The notes under the pieces: model-generated
What the model was told of the DNA's origin: nothing
What the model saw: the letters and a program-made list of their open reading frames with translations, nothing else
Databases searched by the model: none
Program-made: the position numbers and the translations under genes
Origin: Entomortierella parvispora E1425
Lineage: Eukaryota; Fungi; Mortierellomycota
Assembly: GCA_020891255.1 (NCBI GenBank)
Contig: BQFW01000003.1
Coordinates: forward strand, 310,001 to 374,000
Direction: 5' to 3'
Length of the DNA stretch: 64,000 bases
Shown here: positions 17,980 to 27,252 of the stretch, piece after piece
Position numbering within the stretch: position 1 is the stretch's first letter
Layout: the number at the start of each line of letters is the position of its first letter

Positions 17980-19011
17980 TCACAGTCGCCTTGTCTGCAT
18001 CCGATATTGTGGCCTCATGGCCCTTTCCTGCTCCATCTGCATCATGGTCGTTTCATGGTGTTGCTGTGGCTGTTCCTCCAAGACTGCACCTGCGCCAATC
18101 GCACTAATCAACAATTGCCCAATCCAAGTGGCAAAGCCTACATTGAACAGAATTGAGCCGTGAGTACAAAGGACCTCGATTACAAACATTGCATAATCTT
18201 TCTATTCTCTTTTTTTTTTTTTTTTTTTACCTCCAATCACTATGCCAATGATCGCAGCCACGGTGAAGAACGAGTAAACCGGGAGGAAAGCCTTGCACAT
18301 GTCCTTGAGCATGATCCATGGTGGCTCCATCACGACCATCACCGCGTGGAATGGTTTTGCGACCAAGAACCGCAAAGACCAATACACGACCAGACCTATC
18401 CTCCAAACACCTGTCGCCACATATCGTATCACGGCCCAGATGACTTTCCAGGCTTCCCCATTTTGAGCCGTCTTCTCAGTTTTCCTTGAATCAGAGTCCT
18501 CCTTTCCTCTTTGTCGTGGTTTCGTTTGGGTATAGGCAACAGAAGAAGAGTCCGTGATGGTGGACATTGCTGCCTCTGTGGCTGTGGCTGAGATGTCCAT
18601 GGTGGCCGACAGTCCAGAGACCGACACCAGGGCCGATATCGCTGCCAAAGCTTCCTCGGGTGACATCTTGCTGAGGGATTCCAGAGACAGCTTTGGCTCT
18701 GCTGCTGGCACGAGTGGTGGTTGTGATACGATAGGGGGCGGGGGAGAAGGCACCGAGCTTTGTTGTGATGGCAGTTTCGAGAGCCTGGCTGCGTCATGTT
18801 GCTGTTGAAACCCTCTTTGAATCCTGCCCGATGGAGCTCGACCATTGTTGCCCGAGAATAAATTCGGGGCCGAGGTCCAGGCCATGGCGAGGAATACTAC
18901 GAGCGCGGAAACGACAAAGCATTTGTTGAATGGTGGTGGCGCGTCTGTGGTGTCAAGGGCACGCCGACGATCGTGCGCCATTGGGGATGCATCACGAGAG
19001 GAGTCTGACAT
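17980..19011 (-). CDS. Hypothetical membrane protein
   Basis: ORF from MSDSSRDASP (19011) with an N-terminal hydrophobic helix, a Ser/Pro/Ala-rich middle and C-terminal hydrophobic helices. An intron at about 18221-18139 leads to a final exon GFATWIGQLL...RRL*. Confidence 0.7.
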
Positions 19012-19705
19012 TGGAAGCAAGAGATTGATTTCGAATATGAATGATGAGAGGAAGAGGAAAAAAGAAAGAGAGAGAATGATGGTTCCTGCATGCATGTTCG
19101 TGTGGAGAAGGATGTGGGTGAAAATGTGCGGCACGTGCGCGACCATGGGTGCAACGGCCCTGATCGCGGAGGAAGGTGATCTATTTTCTCTGCAGACGAA
19201 ATGAATAATTTCGTTTTATGGAGTTCATTATGTATAATATATTAGTGTTATTGTGTTTGTAGGGTGCAACTGCGAGGGGCATCAGTAATAAAAGTTATCC
19301 TAGGTTTTTTTTTGGAAATCTGATGGCCTGAACCATCAGCTATCGATCATCCACTCGTCCTTTCTTGCTCCCTGCCTTTCTCACAATCCCCGCACCTTTC
19401 CTTTCTCACCATCCCTGCTTTATTCACTGAATATTACAAACTACTAACTTTTCTGCACTCATCATCATCTATCACCGCCCTTGGACACTCAGAGCTTGCC
19501 GTCACCGACTGTAAGGATCACGCTCTATGGACAAAAACAGTGTATCTTTTCGAGACAAGGCTTTTGGCATATGCACGGCGAAAAGAGCGCAAACTTCCGC
19601 TGTCCTCTTGGAGTCGGACTCTTAGATCCATCAGGAGAGTGAACTGTAGTCAGCGTAGTACATATCCATCTAACTAAAGCTGTGTAATCGTCTTTGGTGT
19701 GATAG

Positions 19706-22700
19706 ATGGGCGTGGCCAGCACCTGGCCGTATTTGGCCAACATCGAAGGCCTGGAGTATCCCGAAGTTGTGCCCAAAGATGTTTTCCCGAGAGTCCACAT
19801 CGACATTCCTGCTATCTTGTTTGCGCTTGCGAGAAGCATCCGCTGCAACAAGATCTTCGCGGAAATGAAAAATCACATGAACTCCTCGGCCAACCTCGAG
19901 GCGCCCTACATGCTTCCCGTTGAGATCTCTCTTTTTTTGACCAAAGTCCCTCCTCTTGAGACTGATGCCATCAAGAGCAACACGGAGTTTTTATCACTGA
20001 TCGGCTCCGAGTCTACGCTCCCTCCAGTCCCCTCGGCAATATTTGAGATCGACATCTCGGCGGCGATCGACAAAACACTGTCGAAAAAGTTTTCTAAAGA
20101 CCAAGGAATACTCCACTTTGACGGCGCCAGATCCATCCAAAAGACATACGCCCGCCAGAAAAGAGATCGTTCTCGAATCGGAGCGATTGCAGCGTTTGTC
20201 CACAAGGCATCATCCGTTTTGTCCCATCTTGCCCATCTGCAATCGCAAGTGTCCCTGAAAACTGCAGCCGGAAAGGCCAAGCCAACAAAGAACCAACTAC
20301 TTCGGTTAGTGAAGAGGATTCGCGGCCCACTGCTCAAGGCGTGGATAAATACAAAGGCAATCACTCATAAGGACTGGGACACACTTGGCAATCAACTCGG
20401 CTCAAAGGGATGGAAGGTACACTCCTGTCCAGGGGAGGCTGATGTTTGCATCAGTAGGCATGCTGAAGAAGAGCAGGAAGACACGGTGGTCGCGTCGGCT
20501 GATAGCGACAATGTTTTCCACGGAGCTTCATACGTGTTGCGCAAGAGTCCTCAAGGCGGCCGGTATTACAAATATGATATCGGGGCGATCCTCGGGAGTC
20601 TTGAGCTGTCTTATGAACAATGGCAAGCTGTGGCAGTTCTGGCAGAGAATGATTACGATCGAAAGGTCCCCGGCCTAAGCCTTACCAAGATTGTGGATAC
20701 CATCCGCGACATGGACGAAATGCCAGACATGCCAAAGGCAGTCGACTACGTCAAGAAGTTCTGCTCTCAGAATTCGATCGATCAGGCTGTCTTTAAGAAC
20801 AGTGTGGATATCTTCGTCGACAATAAGGAGGATACAGACACCGGCATCATATTGGAGGATAATGCGGCAAAGCTCGTCGACCACTTGATGCTGCATATCG
20901 TGAATGAAGTCTCCAAGCTTCGATATTGGTAAGTGTCAAGCGTTTGTCCTATTGAAAGGCACTCAAGGACAGCAGTACTGACTTGTTTTCTCCCCTATGC
21001 GATTTCTCAAACAGGAACAAGCGGACCAAACCAACCGCAAGGTAAGATATCTCAAATTGTCACTCTTTTTTTTTTTTTCTTTTTTTTTCTTTTCTTTTCT
21101 TTTCTTTTCTGAACGAATGTCATCAATCCGTCCTTCATCAGGTCAAGCGCCTCATCGTTGCCTGTGGTCCCGGAAGTAGGAAGCTCAAGTCAGACAGAGA
21201 CTAAGCAAGGGTATGGTATCATATTGCTATGCAGAGAGAAAGCATACCATGCCGAAGAACCCTTTCTAAACACTACTGCACTTTATGAATAGCTTTCTGC
21301 GATTCATGAGGGATAGAAAGCGGCCAGACTATCTTTCAAAGATTCGGCATCATGATCGCACAGCTTGGTCGGAGAGTCTTCCCCCTGGCTGGTCTAGGAA
21401 TGAGGGACCCGTGGGGCTATACGATCAGTCCATAGGCCCTCCAAAAGTCCATCCCGTCGCTCCGAACGCAACCCACACCAGCAACTCTGACAACCAAACT
21501 GGATCTGCACCACTTGCGACGGATCTAGTCAACCAGATCTTGGAAGGTGACAACCCAGCAGGTTCATCTTCGATTCCTACTGCCTCAACCAGTCAGAAGC
21601 GTCCCCTTTCGCAGGAGGCAAGCCAAAAGAAGAAGAAAAAGACGAACGAAAAAAAGGCGGCTACCTCCAAGCCCATTTACAACCGTTCAAGCAGAAAGGC
21701 GCGACATGCTGTAAACAAACAGATGGGCGACTTGACGTCTTCGGCTGGCTCAGTCACTGCGACAAGGAGGGAGCACGATACCACGCACATTAAAGCTACT
21801 CTGGAAACAACGTTTTCCCGGGTGGCACTCCAGCCAGGTACTCTGTGCTCCACACTTTACAAAGGGCTTGAAAGCCAGATGAAGGGATCGACACTATTGG
21901 AAGTACAGGATACGTACCGATCCATGCGGACAATGATGATGGACCTGGTCAAAGCAAACTCTGACGCAATTTGGTCGGCGATCGCGGTATTGCAAGACTA
22001 TGCGCTGTCTATTTTCAAGTCTCACCCCACACTTGACGAAGACGACGTCAAGAAAAGAAAAGATGCACTTGGTCCAGTCTACACAAGTCAAATCTTCGTA
22101 TATCATGTGGTCCGGGCCCTTTGGAGATGGAACGATCTTACAGACGCTACCCTCACTCAGCTCAAGTGCGAAGGCACACAGCGGCTTGCGTTTACGGTGG
22201 TACTGGAGTTCAAAAAGAAGCATAGCAACCAGCAGGCCGGCGGGATCCCATTCGACCCCTTTACAAAGAGACCGGAGAAGGCGGTCAGCGCCAAGTTCTT
22301 GGAATCTTGCGCACGCAGCGCGCACGACTTAATCTGCAGCCTTGTTCTGAGAAACGTCGGCGAACTTAAGCAGCGAGTAAGTGCTTGACATTCCTAGTGC
22401 GATGTTTTATGGTCTTTATCTCTTTGCTCGTCGCTCACTCTTGTCTCTGTCCTGTTCGCTAGGTTCTTGTCCAGCAGATACAATTCTCAAAGTCCGAGCA
22501 AGGACGACTTTTCCTGGATTCGATTGAAGGCACTGGTCGGTCAAAGCTGCACGATCCCGTATCCGTTCACTTGCTCCTGAACGCGTTACTGCGACCCGAC
22601 AGTCAAGTTGCGCTATTTCCTGTAATCGCCTTCAAAGACCGGGACCTGGACCTAACCGAAAGGGAGTTCGTTGATGCATGCCGACACCTCAAACCTACAC

Positions 22701-24627
22701 CAACTACAAAGAGTGCACTAGGTGCAATCTTCACTGGAACGGTCGTGGCCGCCGAACAGCGAGCAATCGCCCACAGAGGGGAGCTATTTTTCAACTTTTT
22801 CATGTCGAAAAATACCTCGTACAGACGTGGCACTGCTCTCATGAACCCGGCCTTGAACAGTGAGCGCGCTTTGTTCATCCCTGATTCGCGCCTGAGAATT
22901 CAAACAGAGCTGGAGCACCTGGATGAATACACATCAATCGACAAAACACTCTGCGCTCTCCTGAAGGAATGCTCCAGTTTGGCTAAAAAACAGGACCCAG
23001 GGCTGGCAGATTCTCAAGATTTACTCCATCGTATCTCGGTGTTTCAGGGGCAATGGTCACAGCTTCCTGGTAACCCTCCCCCCACCATCGCGAACATCCA
23101 TACGACTAGTGGATCAATCTCGAACGCCCTCAAGTCGATGGAGGTTGAATTACAACGGCTGAAGGACGTTTTAAGCAACATGTCAGCTACACAACAACGA
23201 CAACTGCGAGACGTGACTCTACATGGTCTGCATGCGGGGTCGAGCAGTAGCGCCGAGAACACACCTCGAAGACACTATGTTCCGACGGGTGTCATCAAGA
23301 CGGACGGTCATAACCTCCATGTGTTGGCTTTTGATTTGACCACATTACGCCCAAAGAAGAATACGAAGAGCAACCCCAGTCCTACCGGCAGTGGTTATCA
23401 GCACAATATCCCTGCCTTAGCTCCAGAGGAAGGGTTTCTTGCTCTGCCTTCCGCTCTACCTTTTGCTGCATCCTCCGCTTTACCTTCGTCTTTGGATATA
23501 TACGACTCAGAGCTTTGGACGTCTCCTGATCCTGTGCTGGAGGAGAGCCTGCCTGGAAGTGAGACTGAAAATCCTAATGAGGGTCCCAGTGTTGGACATG
23601 GAAATCCAGGGCAGGGACAGGTGGCACAGCGAAACCTCGCAGGCGTAAAGACTGCAGCAGTACATGCGAAAGCCCTACCGTATGTCCAGGACCTCTTTTC
23701 AACAGCGCAGCGTGTTCAGTCTTTGGGTGGCCCGCATTTTATCGGGATCGGGGTAGATCCAGGCCGGGCGAAACCTGCAAGCGTGGTCGCAGTACACACC
23801 AAGTACCCTGACTTTTCACAGACCCTCGATATCACCGACACCGTGGCTAAAGACATTCAAAAGCGATACATGGGATGTCTAAACGCAATGAAAAAGACCC
23901 ATGGGATCGACAAACTGGAGAACACATTGATTGCAGATGTTGCTCCCGTACAAGTGAAGGTCACACAGGAAAACGGGACAACGGTTTGCGATTGGAGGGC
24001 AGCTGCCAGCGCACTCTATAGTAACCACTTAGACTGGCTCAGACCTCGCCTCGCTGCATTTGAGAAGCTAAGGACCTTTTACGGATCAATCAGTTTCAAG
24101 AAGGATCTTTATGATATGAGGACGGCGATTCGAAGCGACAGAAGCCTGGTCTGTGCAGCGGCTATCAAGATGGCGCATATTCCCCACCCGAATATTCCAC
24201 CGACTGAAGTTCAGGAGTATCGAGAGACGCCAGCCGTTCTTGGAATAGGTGACGGGGACTTTGGCGGCCGAAAGGAAAAAACCTTGGACGAACTAGCGCG
24301 GACAGTAAGTGTTGCTGGAGTCGATTTTCAAAGAGAGTAAGGGGTGTTATATCTAACATCTGGTTCTCTTATACGTTATAGGCGAATGCCAATGGCATCC
24401 CAGCGGTGAAGCTCCCGGAGTTTCGATCCAGTCAGTTCTGCAGCCGATGTCGCTTCCGGGCAGTTCAGAAAGGCAGATCCATCCTTTGTGAAAACTGCAG
24501 TTGGGACATCGACAGAGACCATAACGCCGGCGAAAATCTCGCCAGATGTCTGGGTACTCACCTACAAACACAGACATGGCCAGCGCCTCTCGACAAAGCG
24601 CTCGCCAAAGTTCACTCGCGCCAGTGA
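19706..24627 (+). CDS. XPG/FEN1-family nuclease fused to Fanzor (TnpB-like RuvC + Zn finger), 1496 aa, six exons
   Basis: Exons 19706-20928, 21015-21041, 21142-21210, 21293-22376, 22463-24304 and 24382-24627. All five introns are GT-AG with compatible phases, and the total of 4491 nt gives 1496 aa plus stop. N-terminus: MGV start, HID, FDG..K, GEAD, SADSD, ENDY..PGL (XPG/FEN1). C-terminus: KTDG, GVDPG (RuvC-I), GIGDGDF, PEFRSSQFC (RuvC-II), CSRC..CENC, DRDHNA (RuvC-III). Confidence 0.88.
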
Positions 24628-24778
24628 GGCTCATGTGGAATGAGCACAACCTTCTTTACAGCATCGGTAAGTGCAACAAAAATCCGAGGACAAAAGCACA
24701 AACCTTTGTAGACTCTATTTCAACTAATTTATTCTCACGTCTTTATGCATTTCGGGAAGTTTAGCTGTATTACCAAGT

Positions 24779-27252
24779 CTAAAGTGCTTTCGCGACATCT
24801 TTTCCTGCCCACCACAGCCATATCCGGAGCATGCCTTCGACAACCCACAGTCTCCATCGCATCGAAAAGTTGTCCACGAGGAATAACAAACTGCGCTTCA
24901 GTGTAGGGGTGTCGCCAAACAAGTACCATCGATTCCTAGGTCCCAGCCCCAGATCCTTGCCATGTGCCCTTGTCTCTTCAGAACTGTTTTCGTCTTTGTT
25001 ATCTTGGACGCCATACCACCATGATGCCAATCGACCCCAACGGCCATTAAGTCGGTCAAGCTTACGTTGCTCTCGTTTCCGACGACGCTCCTGTTCTTCT
25101 GCTCGGGTTTCTGTCCAGACGCCTCTTGTAGCATAGAGAGCATTGATATGGAATCGCTCCACGTTCTCTCCCCCGAGTTGCTGATGGATGCCTCGAGTAA
25201 GGTTGATGGTCCGGAATACCAGAAGCATATCGCGTGGAAGGACCTCCAAGAACTCAAAGACCTCAGCCATCGTCACATTCTTCATGGAGGACCGAATCTC
25301 GGTACGCTGTGCTGCCGTCATGCCCTCGCCAATTTTTTGAGTCGAGTTGGCAGGGCGTTGAATAAAGATAAGAGGAATAAATCCGACATAGTTTTCAGGG
25401 ATGCCGATGTTTGCTGAAGACTCATTCAAGAGTTTCTGGTCGTTCAAGATCAATGCCTTCCACAGTTTGCAATAGTTGTAACGGAAGGTCTCGTCCAATG
25501 TGCGATACAATCCATGATCCAAGAGAACAAATCGACTTTTTCCCGTGAACTCGTCCTTTGTGATCAGGATGTTGCCGGCCTATAAAGAGAGGGCATGAAG
25601 TCAAGTGTTAACAATCGAATGACAGGGGTGCTTTGGAGGATCTTCAAAGTCTTTCTTGTAGTTGCTTACGTGAGGATCACAATGAACAACTCCATGTTGA
25701 TACATCATTTCAGCAAATACTTCTAAAAGTGTTGTTCGCACCCACTTGGGTGATACTCCCAATTTGACCAATCCTTCGACGTCGTTGACTTTGATGCCAT
25801 TGATAAACTCCATGGTAAGAATCTTTGTCGACGAGAGATCCCAGTAAATTTCAGGCACATAAAAGTCCTTGCGATTCTTGAATCGCTCCTTGGTTGCCTC
25901 ACCATTCCTAACGAAGAACACATATTCATGTTAATGAATGTAGCTTATTGTCATTGAACGGCTCAGGGTTATTATCAACGTCATACCTGGCCTCATTGGT
26001 AAAGTCAAACTCGGAGGTGAGATTCTCTCTGAATTCATTCACGATCCAGCCGAGCTCGAATTCAGGGAACAAGAATCCAACCATGTTGGAAAGAGTTTCC
26101 ATAGTCCACATGTCAGCTATTGATGAGTACGCAAAGAAATTAGACAGGAACACACCATCGCTACCATTACTCTCAATAGTTTGTCCCATGCATACTTACT
26201 TTTAAACAGTCGTCGGACATCATTATATTGAACTTTGACTGCTGCCAACCGTCCGTCCATTGTAACAGCTATCCGAATGACGAGAACAAAGGTTAGTATA
26301 TTACTTGAGAAGAACTCGTGGCAACAATAATATGCTTGCCCTACCTCTGTGTACTTGAGCCAAACTAGCAGCTGCCAGAGGCAAAGGATCGAATTCTCGA
26401 AACAGTTCAAGAGGCATTTTGCCAAACTCCTCACGAAAGACCTGCTCAACCTCCTTCATAGACTTGAAGGGAGCTCGATCTTGAAGAATAGAGAGCGTGT
26501 TGGTATACTCTGGAGGGACAATATAGGTCAATGACGCCACATGCTGTCCTGCTTTGCAGTAAATTCCAGTGTTCAGTCTACAAAGCCGAAGCAACCGATT
26601 GGCGCATCGTTGATGGACGACTTTTCGTTCGGCCTTGTATGTGTCAGAAGTGTATCCTTCCGAAGCGTATCTCAAATGCAACACCTTGTAATCTGCCATG
26701 CAGAGGCACCTGAATGCAATCGAAAAGAACTTGAAAATTAGTGATCGGTGGTGCGCGGCTCGATCTGCACTCAGATCGGAGCGTCATTTTTTTTTTCCTT
26801 TTTAGATACCCTGTGACGAAAGTAGCGACGGATCGAAAGATGGCTACGCTGTAGATCGTTGCATGTTCGCGATATGTGGGGCTCCATGCTATGCCTACAG
26901 CTGATACCAGGGTGCCCAGACCAAGACCGATCCATAACCCTTTCTTGACTTGTTTCCACAGCGATCTTGGAGCTCTGCCGTCGGTTTGTGCAGTCAACGC
27001 AGTCTTTGGAGTTGTGGAAAGGTTTCGAGTCAGTCTCCAGCAGCTCTGGCTTTTCCGGATCGCGCGAGAGACAGGTGTGGTGGTATAGTGTATGCTGCTA
27101 TAAGGTGCATTGGCTACTGTCCGGAGTGTCCTGATGTGAAGCTGGGGTTGCCATACATTCCTTGGGGTTGGAAGCAAAGCAGAACCGACATGCCGACTTT
27201 GACCAGAGAACCAACGGAAAGCGATGGCGCACGCCGGACGGGAGATGGGCAT
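24779..27252 (-). CDS. ADCK1: ABC1/aarF atypical kinase, ADCK1/MCP2-like (mitochondrial)
   Basis: Arg/Ser-rich presequence MPISRPAC..; NTGIYCKAGQHV; EFDPLPLAAASLAQVHR; AVKVQY; EFDFTNEA; LTMEFINGIK; GVVHCDPH; LDHGLYR. Multi-exon. Confidence 0.9.

Follow-up and report, generated by a model that had tools for sequence, protein, structure and literature searches.

The window analyzed here, a 64,000-nucleotide (nt) stretch of contig BQFW01000003.1 from Entomortierella parvispora E1425, contains a mobile element whose gene fuses a FEN1/EXO1/XPG-type 5′ nuclease domain and a Fanzor domain in a single spliced frame. The fusion of the two domains was confirmed, and the segment from ~19193 to 24768 is one intact copy of a DNA-transposon-like element of ~5.6 kb that is mobile and present in multiple copies. 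Overall, we consider it likely that this copy, bounded by what are probably imperfect terminal inverted repeats (TIRs), carries one spliced gene for a two-nuclease protein of ~1500 amino acids (aa) that combines a FEN/EXO1-like with a Fanzor1-type module and whose presumed role is to cut DNA and then resect the break. To our knowledge, no RNA-guided DNA nucleases other than Fanzors are known from eukaryotes. Fanzor applications are limited by low activity, and the natural role of these enzymes in eukaryotic genomes is unclear. All coordinates below refer to the window, and protein numbering follows the six-exon model.

In the open reading frame (ORF) listing, the locus appears as four pieces at 19706-20932, 21285-22388, 22571-24340 and 24406-24627. 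The preliminary description of this DNA had proposed that six exons separated by five GT-AG introns unite these pieces, and joining the exons reproduced both the open frame and its intron phases: the 4491 nt comprise 1496 codons plus a stop codon with no internal stops, and the five coding introns, of 86, 100, 82, 86 and 77 nt, each run from GT to AG with phases 2, 2, 2, 0 and 0. Intron donors in the window read GTAAGT, GTAAGA or GTATGG. A TAA at 20930 lies where it had been described and is removed with intron 1; likewise, the residues singled out as probable catalytic or landmark positions (D33, D139, E244/D246, D266/D268, D316, D1082, D1233, E1428 and D1461) and the GIGDGDF and CSRC/CENC motifs all occupy their proposed places in the model translation. 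An in-frame stop precedes the ATG at 19706. A coding sequence extending upstream of this ATG into the first exon was considered and rejected, given an in-frame TAA at 19445-19447 with no later ATG. The element and its gene comprise the following features, where X2 and X3 are two sequencing runs of one sample, L001 and L003 represent two types of diverged relative, and UTR denotes an untranslated region.

19193..19510, + strand: left end of the element, a terminal inverted repeat remnant (CAGACGAAATGAATAA...) followed by the non-coding first exon; boundary placed to about ±20 nt.
19511..19705, + strand: 5′-UTR intron whose last nucleotide directly precedes the start codon; ~19509 is joined to 19706 in an X3 contig.
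19706..20928, + strand: exon 1, FEN1/EXO1/XPG-type 5′ nuclease domain, aa 1-407.
20929..21014, + strand: intron 1, GT..AG, which takes out the in-frame TAA at 20930; sites kept in L001 and L003.
21015..21041, + strand: micro-exon 2, 27 nt, encoding NKRTKPTA-; found between exons 1 and 4 in an X3 contig.
21042..21141, + strand: intron 2, GT..AG with conserved sites; donor at 21042 used in an X3 contig.
21142..21210, + strand: micro-exon 3, 69 nt, supported by comparison with relatives; possibly a cassette exon.
21211..21292, + strand: intron 3, GTATGG..AATAG, acceptor AATAG/CTT conserved; the X3 paralog contig enters at 21274 instead.
21293..22376, + strand: exon 4, a basic, low-complexity linker that leads into the middle region conserved in the family.
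22377..22462, + strand: intron 4, GT..AG, skipped exactly by an X3 contig (shorter side 255 nt).
22463..24304, + strand: exon 5, a helical REC-like region, the WED-like strand YVPTGVIKTDG, RuvC-I GVDPG (D1233) and GIGDGDF at the canonical RuvC-II position.
24305..24381, + strand: intron 5, GT..AG, skipped exactly by an X3 contig.
24382..24627, + strand: exon 6, the relocated catalytic Glu E1428, a C4 zinc finger (C1435/C1438/C1451/C1454), RuvC-III R1460 D1461 and the stop codon.
24628..24768, + strand: 3′ non-coding end, with two hairpins, a 3′-UTR intron and a right terminal repeat whose last bases are ...TTTAGCTG; candidate region for an omega RNA.

Exon 4 contains basic runs, KKKKK at 552 and KKRK at 693, and a Pfam scan of this exon matched no family; by BLASTP, residues ~600-930 of the model are collinear with nine long family members. 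Separately, intron 2 holds a long T-rich tract with CTTTT repeats (21058-21118), which was masked in read mapping and at which contigs break.

The fused frame recurs in two types of diverged relative recovered from public assemblies, L001/L002 from Logan and L003/L004/L011 from soil metagenomes in ENA. Both the L001 and the L003 type carry the pieces in the same order, with 62-69% protein identity to the window model, and homologous splice sites yield open ORFs of 1536 aa in L001 and 1508 aa in L003. All donors and acceptors are conserved, and the donor TGTAAGG and acceptor ATAG/ATGGG of the 5′-UTR intron are invariant in both. The lengths of introns 1 to 5 in the window, L001 and L003 are 86/86/87, 100/77/79, 82/82/95, 86/88/92 and 77/79/90 nt, differences that are not multiples of three. 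Because the same splice sites give open ORFs despite these frame-breaking lengths, the fused frame is more than a product of chance. Furthermore, micro-exon 2 is 27 nt long in all three sequences, and micro-exon 3, of 69, 87 and 87 nt, differs by indels of 3 and 15 nt, retains its flanking AG and GT, and leaves the frame open in three of three.

An exhaustive phmmer search with exon 1 returned 208 relatives, long fusion proteins among them. Fourteen of the relatives listed exceed 1000 aa, and most of these are collinear with the N-terminal, middle and C-terminal regions of the model. At least six combine the FEN-like N-terminus and the Pfam Cas12f1-like_TNB C-terminus in one protein. Five are annotated Mortierellaceae proteins, from Mortierella alpina (KAF9967645 and KAF9949650), Podila epigama (KAF9430362), Dissophora globulifera (KAG0303305) and Mortierella sp. 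(KAF9146337). The sixth, P0136, is a distant family member encoded by a single intron-free ORF of 1102 aa (L009, 826-4134) on a JGI metagenome contig, in which every catalytic motif of both nucleases is present. A further relative, P0017, is also a single uninterrupted ORF on a metagenome contig, where the KRT+ motif of micro-exon 2 recurs. The proposed co-occurrence of the two domains in one reading frame thus holds both in the window and in diverged relatives (L001, L003 and P0136). The word-index protein searches, whose reach was confined to close relatives of similar length, gave 2, 4 and 2 matches; with exon 4 as the query, the protein index returned only relatives of 53-68% identity. Several annotated family models end just after GDGxF, the position of intron 5 in the window, and since the two points coincide, these models probably lack the last exon. 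As a practical matter, P0136 may be the easiest member of the family to express.

Transcript-like evidence was subsequently sought for the exon junctions. No run indexed as RNA contains the sequence of the window gene; it is held by the two runs X2 and X3. The former behaves as a genome, with 42 Mb of contigs, 99+% identity and introns retained. The latter has 24 Mb of contigs, contains adapters, skips GT-AG introns where X2 retains them, and reaches a depth of 5-12 on the gene versus 110-150 on neighbouring sequence, and on these grounds we infer that X3 is RNA. At ~96% identity to the window, its contigs come from a paralogous copy. They splice out ~19510-19705, 86 nt at intron 1, exactly 22377-22462 and exactly 24305-24381; the skip at intron 1 is shifted by 2 nt owing to a T20927A variant. 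One contig of 1532 nt joins exons 1, 2, 4 and 5. A division into two separate transcripts, the first ending at the TAA at 20930, is contradicted by X3 contigs that splice 20928 to 21015 and run on into exons 4 and 5. Of the three junctions that the preliminary description had flagged for checking, 20928/21015 was found spliced; the donor of intron 2 was used as well, and 21041/21142 and 21210/21293 went unseen, as the contig passes from 21041 to 21274. Since the junction-crossing contig skips exon 3, this exon is placed by comparison with relatives. Skipping exon 3 and using the canonical acceptor of exon 4 would keep the frame and give 1473 aa.

Some of these junction data weigh against a single fused product. 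The only contig across the FEN-Fanzor junction derives from the ~96% identical paralog and omits exon 3, it enters 19 nt upstream of exon 4 at a site where the window has AC, not AG, and the resulting junction in the window sequence leads to a stop at codon 423; moreover, X3 is indexed as ‘DNA?’, and its RNA nature is deduced from its behaviour. One transcription unit might produce two proteins, with a dominant mRNA that skips exon 3, enters at the upstream acceptor and encodes a FEN-like protein of ~420-470 aa whose translation stops shortly after exon 2; another isoform or an internal start would then supply the Fanzor on its own, and the 1496-aa ORF would be a minor or unused isoform. This would agree with the direct 21041-to-21274 join, with the lack of any X3 contig over 21200-21273, with L001, which has AG at the equivalent entry site and where the same junction brings a stop at aa 473, and with an ATG at 21285 that is in the frame of exon 4 and overlaps the early stop. 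Nevertheless, we regard it as unlikely, as the window lacks the AG at 21272-21273, the ATG at 21285 is absent from L001 and L003, and the junction contig is both paralogous and of low depth (6.9), whereas frame-neutral micro-exons preserve the fused frame in three diverged lineages and relatives encode both domains in one uninterrupted ORF.

A single fused protein remains our preferred reading, and the fold of its N-terminal part was predicted with confidence. AlphaFold2 modelled residues 1-407 with a mean predicted local distance difference test score (pLDDT) of 93.7 and a predicted template-modelling score (pTM) of 0.90. Used as a Foldseek query, this model found FEN1, EXO1, XPG and Rad2 as all of its top matches (E 4e-9 to 1e-5, probability 1.0, TM-scores 0.45-0.6, spanning residues 1-408), and it displays the PIN-like alpha/beta core with a helical arch and a helix-two-turn-helix (H2TH) region that characterizes the group. 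A family profile searched against the Protein Data Bank (PDB) matched EXO1 at E 2e-13, followed by XPG, Rad2, FEN1 and GEN1; single-sequence phmmer searches of the PDB with exon 1 and with exon 5 gave no match, and family profiles were needed.

All seven active-site carboxylates are present (D33, D139, E244, D246, D266, D268 and D316). Across an alignment of 50 relatives, D139, D246, D266, D268 and D316 are at least 90% conserved, and D139, K146, R153, D246, D266, S267, D268 and D316 are invariant or nearly so. In the profile alignment, E244/D246, D266/D268 and D316 correspond to the EAD, DSD and DY motifs of EXO1, and K146/R153 align with the gateway pair K85/R92; D33 is assigned by position. 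The arch is unusually long, with helices at 144-183 and 195-214. To be set against membership are the Pfam results, in which XPG_I reached 21.1 bits versus a gathering cut-off of 24.9 and XPG_N gave no match. As the family profile reaches EXO1 at E 2e-13 despite the sub-threshold XPG_I score, we interpret the domain as a divergent branch rather than a non-member. The XPG/FEN1-type nuclease with its acidic set, first recognized by eye, was thus borne out by the structure model, the EXO1 profile match and the conserved carboxylates. Taken together, sequence and model support a 5′ nuclease of the Rad2/XPG family whose active site is intact and for which 5′ flap or exonuclease activity is predicted.

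The C-terminal half was identified primarily through profiles and motifs. Exon 6 matches Pfam Cas12f1-like_TNB (PF07282) at E 1.1e-8, with 35.5 bits versus a cut-off of 26.3, so that the proposed profile check succeeded for this domain and fell short for XPG_I and XPG_N. A profile of the C-terminal family matches TnpB (1e-10), the mimivirus TnpB-like protein L79 (3e-10), PpFz1 (4e-5), Cas12f and, over ~330 positions, SpuFz1 (8gkh, E 9e-7). The family alignment conserves YV.TG.I.TNG, G(I/V)DPG, FYGS..FK, GDGxF, (D/N/P)E(F/Y)xTS..C..C and RD..(A/G).N. Its RuvC-I aligns with GVDLG of TnpB, and GDGxF, which occupies the canonical RuvC-II position, is a non-acidic motif there, with the Glu relocated beside the zinc finger. 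Specifically, the family motif (D/N/P)-E-(F/Y)-x-(T/S)-S aligns with VNEY of L79, placing the family Glu (E1428) on L79 E467. We take L79 to be the same mimivirus Fanzor as the one named ApmFNuc. In ApmFNuc, the substitution E467A was reported to abolish cleavage (PMC10530073). The Fanzor motif of Bao & Jurka 2013, D-X(125,275)-[TS][TS]-X-X-[C4 zinc finger]-X(5,50)-RD (PMC3627910), is present as D1233, 197 residues, S1431 S1432, Q F, C1435/C1438/C1451/C1454, 5 residues and R1460 D1461.

Structural comparison of this half was less informative. Because an intron splits the region, a structure was predicted for exon 5 rather than for the whole C-terminal half; the prediction is of low quality (pLDDT 59), and none of its fold matches to Fanzor reached significance, which counts against the assignment as far as it goes. 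The best non-trivial matches of this poor model were SpuFz and PpFz, with a Foldseek E of 0.2 and probability of 0.93 to SpuFz and a VIA-align Z of 7.0 on residues 413-603, below the level that excludes chance. Owing to the quality of the model, these matches carry no verdict. Hence, of the anticipated structural matches, the FEN1/XPG fold was recovered for the N-terminal domain and the RuvC fold was not recovered at significant scores from exon 5. The Fanzor hallmarks themselves (the TNB domain, the RuvC-I Asp, the relocated Glu, the C4 zinc finger and the RuvC-III Asp) were all found, and together with the profile matches to TnpB and Fanzor, they support a Fanzor1-type TnpB homologue predicted to carry out RNA-guided DNA cleavage.

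The protein can be compared with two known families. With SpuFz1 of Spizellomyces punctatus and PpFz1 of Parasitella parasitica (PDB 8gkh, 9cf0), it shares the order RuvC Asp ... [TS][TS]-xx-C4 zinc finger ... RD, the Gly motif at the canonical RuvC-II position and the Glu just before the zinc finger; further likenesses to Fanzor1 are the fungal host, the intron-bearing gene and probable residence in a TIR-bounded DNA transposon without its own transposase. In contrast to these proteins of ~640-720 aa, the window protein measures ~1500 aa and carries a complete FEN/EXO1-type domain and a basic linker of ~200 aa ahead of the Fanzor part, and its omega RNA is a candidate and its activity a prediction. 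With the Rad2/XPG family (FEN1, EXO1, XPG/Rad2 and GEN1), the N-terminal domain shares the fold over 408 aa and the seven carboxylates; its first arch helix likewise bears the Lys/Arg pair, and its H2TH region contains DY. It is only 13-17% identical to these enzymes, has a much longer helical arch and, unlike them, has no PCNA-box or repair-partner regions, is joined to an RNA-guided nuclease and is encoded by a transposon.

Two further precedents are relevant. Engineered fusions of T5 exonuclease with FnCas12a or enIscB, an approach also tried with SpuFz1, raise editing efficiency (PMC11471210, PMC13434818); there, too, a 5′ exonuclease of the FEN superfamily is tethered to a compact RNA-guided nuclease. 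Those fusions are man-made and use a phage enzyme, whereas the window protein is natural and contains a eukaryotic-type Rad2/XPG domain, whose effect on repair is suggested by analogy. The PGv-1 Mariner element of Phaeocystis globosa virus holds a GIY-YIG nuclease and a Fanzor1 (Bao & Jurka 2013, PMC3627910), but as separate proteins, with a different nuclease family and its own transposase, in contrast to the single polypeptide and missing transposase here. The preliminary description knew of no characterized Fanzor of such architecture, and our literature search, which included the main Fanzor papers, found no description of a FEN-Fanzor fusion; most subscription journals lay outside that search, which is therefore not proof of absence. 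The architecture itself is already public in GenBank and UniProt as unnamed hypothetical proteins, the deposited members being labelled ‘hypothetical protein’ or ‘Cas12f1-like TNB domain-containing protein’. With labels this generic and several gene models probably lacking the last exon, the family is easy to miss.

We delineated the element from copy number and from the points where homology ends. In the genomic run X2, contig word depth is 400-445 inside the element compared with ~80 in its flanks, and it rises from ~86 at 19000-19199 to ~790 at 19200-19399. The multi-copy zone begins at ~19195-19215, and two contigs with differing upstream sequence converge on ...ACAGACGAACTTCT just before 19197/19215. 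The leftmost 300-400 nt (19200-19600) stand at about twice the depth of the body (~790 versus ~400-445), and the left end also occurs in a contig of 9.7 kb whose only other shared segment is 24001-24115, so this end is shared with other elements or deletion derivatives. On the right, the similarity to all relatives breaks off at ...TTTAGCTGTA, which lies 141-143 nt beyond the stop codon; that to L001, L002 and L003 ends sharply after GCTGTA, and genomic contigs show at least three different continuations beyond 24769/24770. The sequenced strain has about five near-identical copies, implying recent amplification. Orthologous loci, as opposed to mobile copies, were considered and rejected, since L001 and L002, near-identical within the element, become unrelated just beyond it, and the flanks of L001 and L003 are unlike the genes that flank the element in the window.

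The termini are consistent with a DNA transposon. The relative L006 has a 27-nt imperfect TIR with 20 of 27 positions matching, a score reached by 6 of 500 shuffles, and the left repeat of the window keeps 11 of 12 positions of its inner part after a deletion of ~9 nt. An inverted-repeat scan of the window detected no terminal repeats, a result explained by this deletion. The element runs from CAG to CTG; TA follows CTG at the right in every copy seen and precedes CAG in two paralog contigs. No transposase is encoded by the element, and the ORF listing leaves room for no other gene inside it. Fanzor1-only elements with Mariner TIRs and TA duplications have been described (Bao & Jurka, PMC3627910), and TIR-like ends with TA alongside would fit mobilization in trans by a Tc1/mariner transposase. 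In the window, the damaged left repeat and a left flank of TG instead of TA speak against an intact, mobile copy. Together with the low transcript depth of the family (5-12 versus 110-150 on neighbouring sequence), the damaged repeat might point to a relic whose frame is open by recent descent only and in which at least one of the two nuclease modules has lost activity, as has happened in nuclease-dead relatives of TnpB. We think this very improbable, because neither module has lost any catalytic residue in the window, these residues are conserved in relatives at 20-70% identity, the reading frame is maintained across lineages, and near-identical copies speak for amplification in the recent past.

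A genomic contig in X2, of single-copy depth (~71), joins 19737 to 21243; it represents a paralogous copy in which the entire FEN-like exon and both micro-exons are deleted and a Fanzor-only gene is left. In L005-L008, which are of the L001 type, an inverted repeat with arms of ~100-170 nt lies ~200-560 nt upstream of the start codon, for which the window has no equivalent; its spacer of ~70 nt occurs in both orientations, one in L005/L006 and the other in L007/L008.

The 3′ end of the element provides a candidate for the guide RNA. Conservation continues for ~140 nt beyond the stop codon, as far as the sharp element end, and two conserved hairpins lie at ~24618-24655, the first spanning the stop codon, with one compensatory pair. 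An X3 contig passes from 24666 to CTGTA and the flank of another copy, which defines a conserved 98-nt GT-AG intron in the 3′ UTR (24667-24764) whose acceptor is only 4-6 nt from the element end. Just before its donor, ACAGC can pair with the terminal GCTGT. Splicing of this intron would put the two hairpins beside the element's terminal bases and the adjacent flank. Rfam gave no relevant match in 19000-25000.

On the preferred reading, a gene with five coding introns and one intron in each UTR would produce a protein composed of a FEN/EXO1-like module, a long, basic and probably disordered linker, and a Fanzor module. Guided by an RNA that derives from the element's conserved 3′ end together with the neighbouring flank, the Fanzor module may cut DNA, after which the tethered FEN/EXO1-like module would remove 5′ flaps or resect 5′ ends at the break. 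Such resection could make precise re-ligation less likely and promote homologous recombination with a copy that bears the element, resulting in retention or homing. An equivalent effect is what engineers aim for in joining T5 exonuclease to Cas12a, IscB or SpuFz1. This cut-then-resect function is inferred, the guide RNA is a candidate proposed from the conserved 3′ end, and the nuclease activities of family members are predictions from sequence and models; these, too, have to be held against the proposal. More specifically, we tentatively entertain the possibility that the protein is a natural cut-and-resect effector, in which a transposon-borne RNA-guided nuclease has acquired an EXO1/FEN1-like domain that, acting in cis, dictates the repair pathway at the break and favours recombinational copying or deletion-prone repair within a eukaryotic nucleus. 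In a bolder variant, the two nucleases together would replace a transposase altogether.

A different use of the FEN-like domain is conceivable even if the fusion is real, namely the trimming or maturation of the guide RNA, or cleavage of hairpin or flap structures at the element ends in place of a transposase. FEN-family enzymes are structure-specific nucleases, and such a role would fit the conserved hairpins at the right end and the inverted repeat with ~170-nt arms near the left end of some relatives; in addition, an element without a transposase occupies several sites in near-identical copies. We consider such a role improbable, as the ends resemble ordinary TIRs with TA alongside, which would fit a Tc1/mariner transposase acting in trans, as described for Fanzor1-only elements, the resection enzyme EXO1 is the closest match in sequence, and the gateway Lys/Arg pair of enzymes that process DNA 5′ ends is conserved.

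With the cut-then-resect reading, the permanent joining of a Fanzor and a FEN1/EXO1-type domain suggests that these elements take advantage of the break they introduce partly by processing its ends; neither active site has been lost through at least 70-80% sequence divergence, and the element has recently amplified. The sequence of RNA-guided cut, 5′ resection and recombinational copying thereby becomes testable, and the protein may serve as a naturally optimized counterpart to the T5-exonuclease fusions made on Cas12a, IscB and SpuFz1. If true, cut-and-resect activity would make this the first natural enzyme of the TnpB/Fanzor/Cas12 lineage to possess another, independent active site for DNA cleavage, and editing tools could be built directly on it.

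Finally, an ORF of 247 aa on the minus strand (24779-25522) ends ~10 nt beyond the right end of the element. It is well covered in X3, at a depth of ~112, which suggests that the element inserted directly downstream of an expressed host gene.

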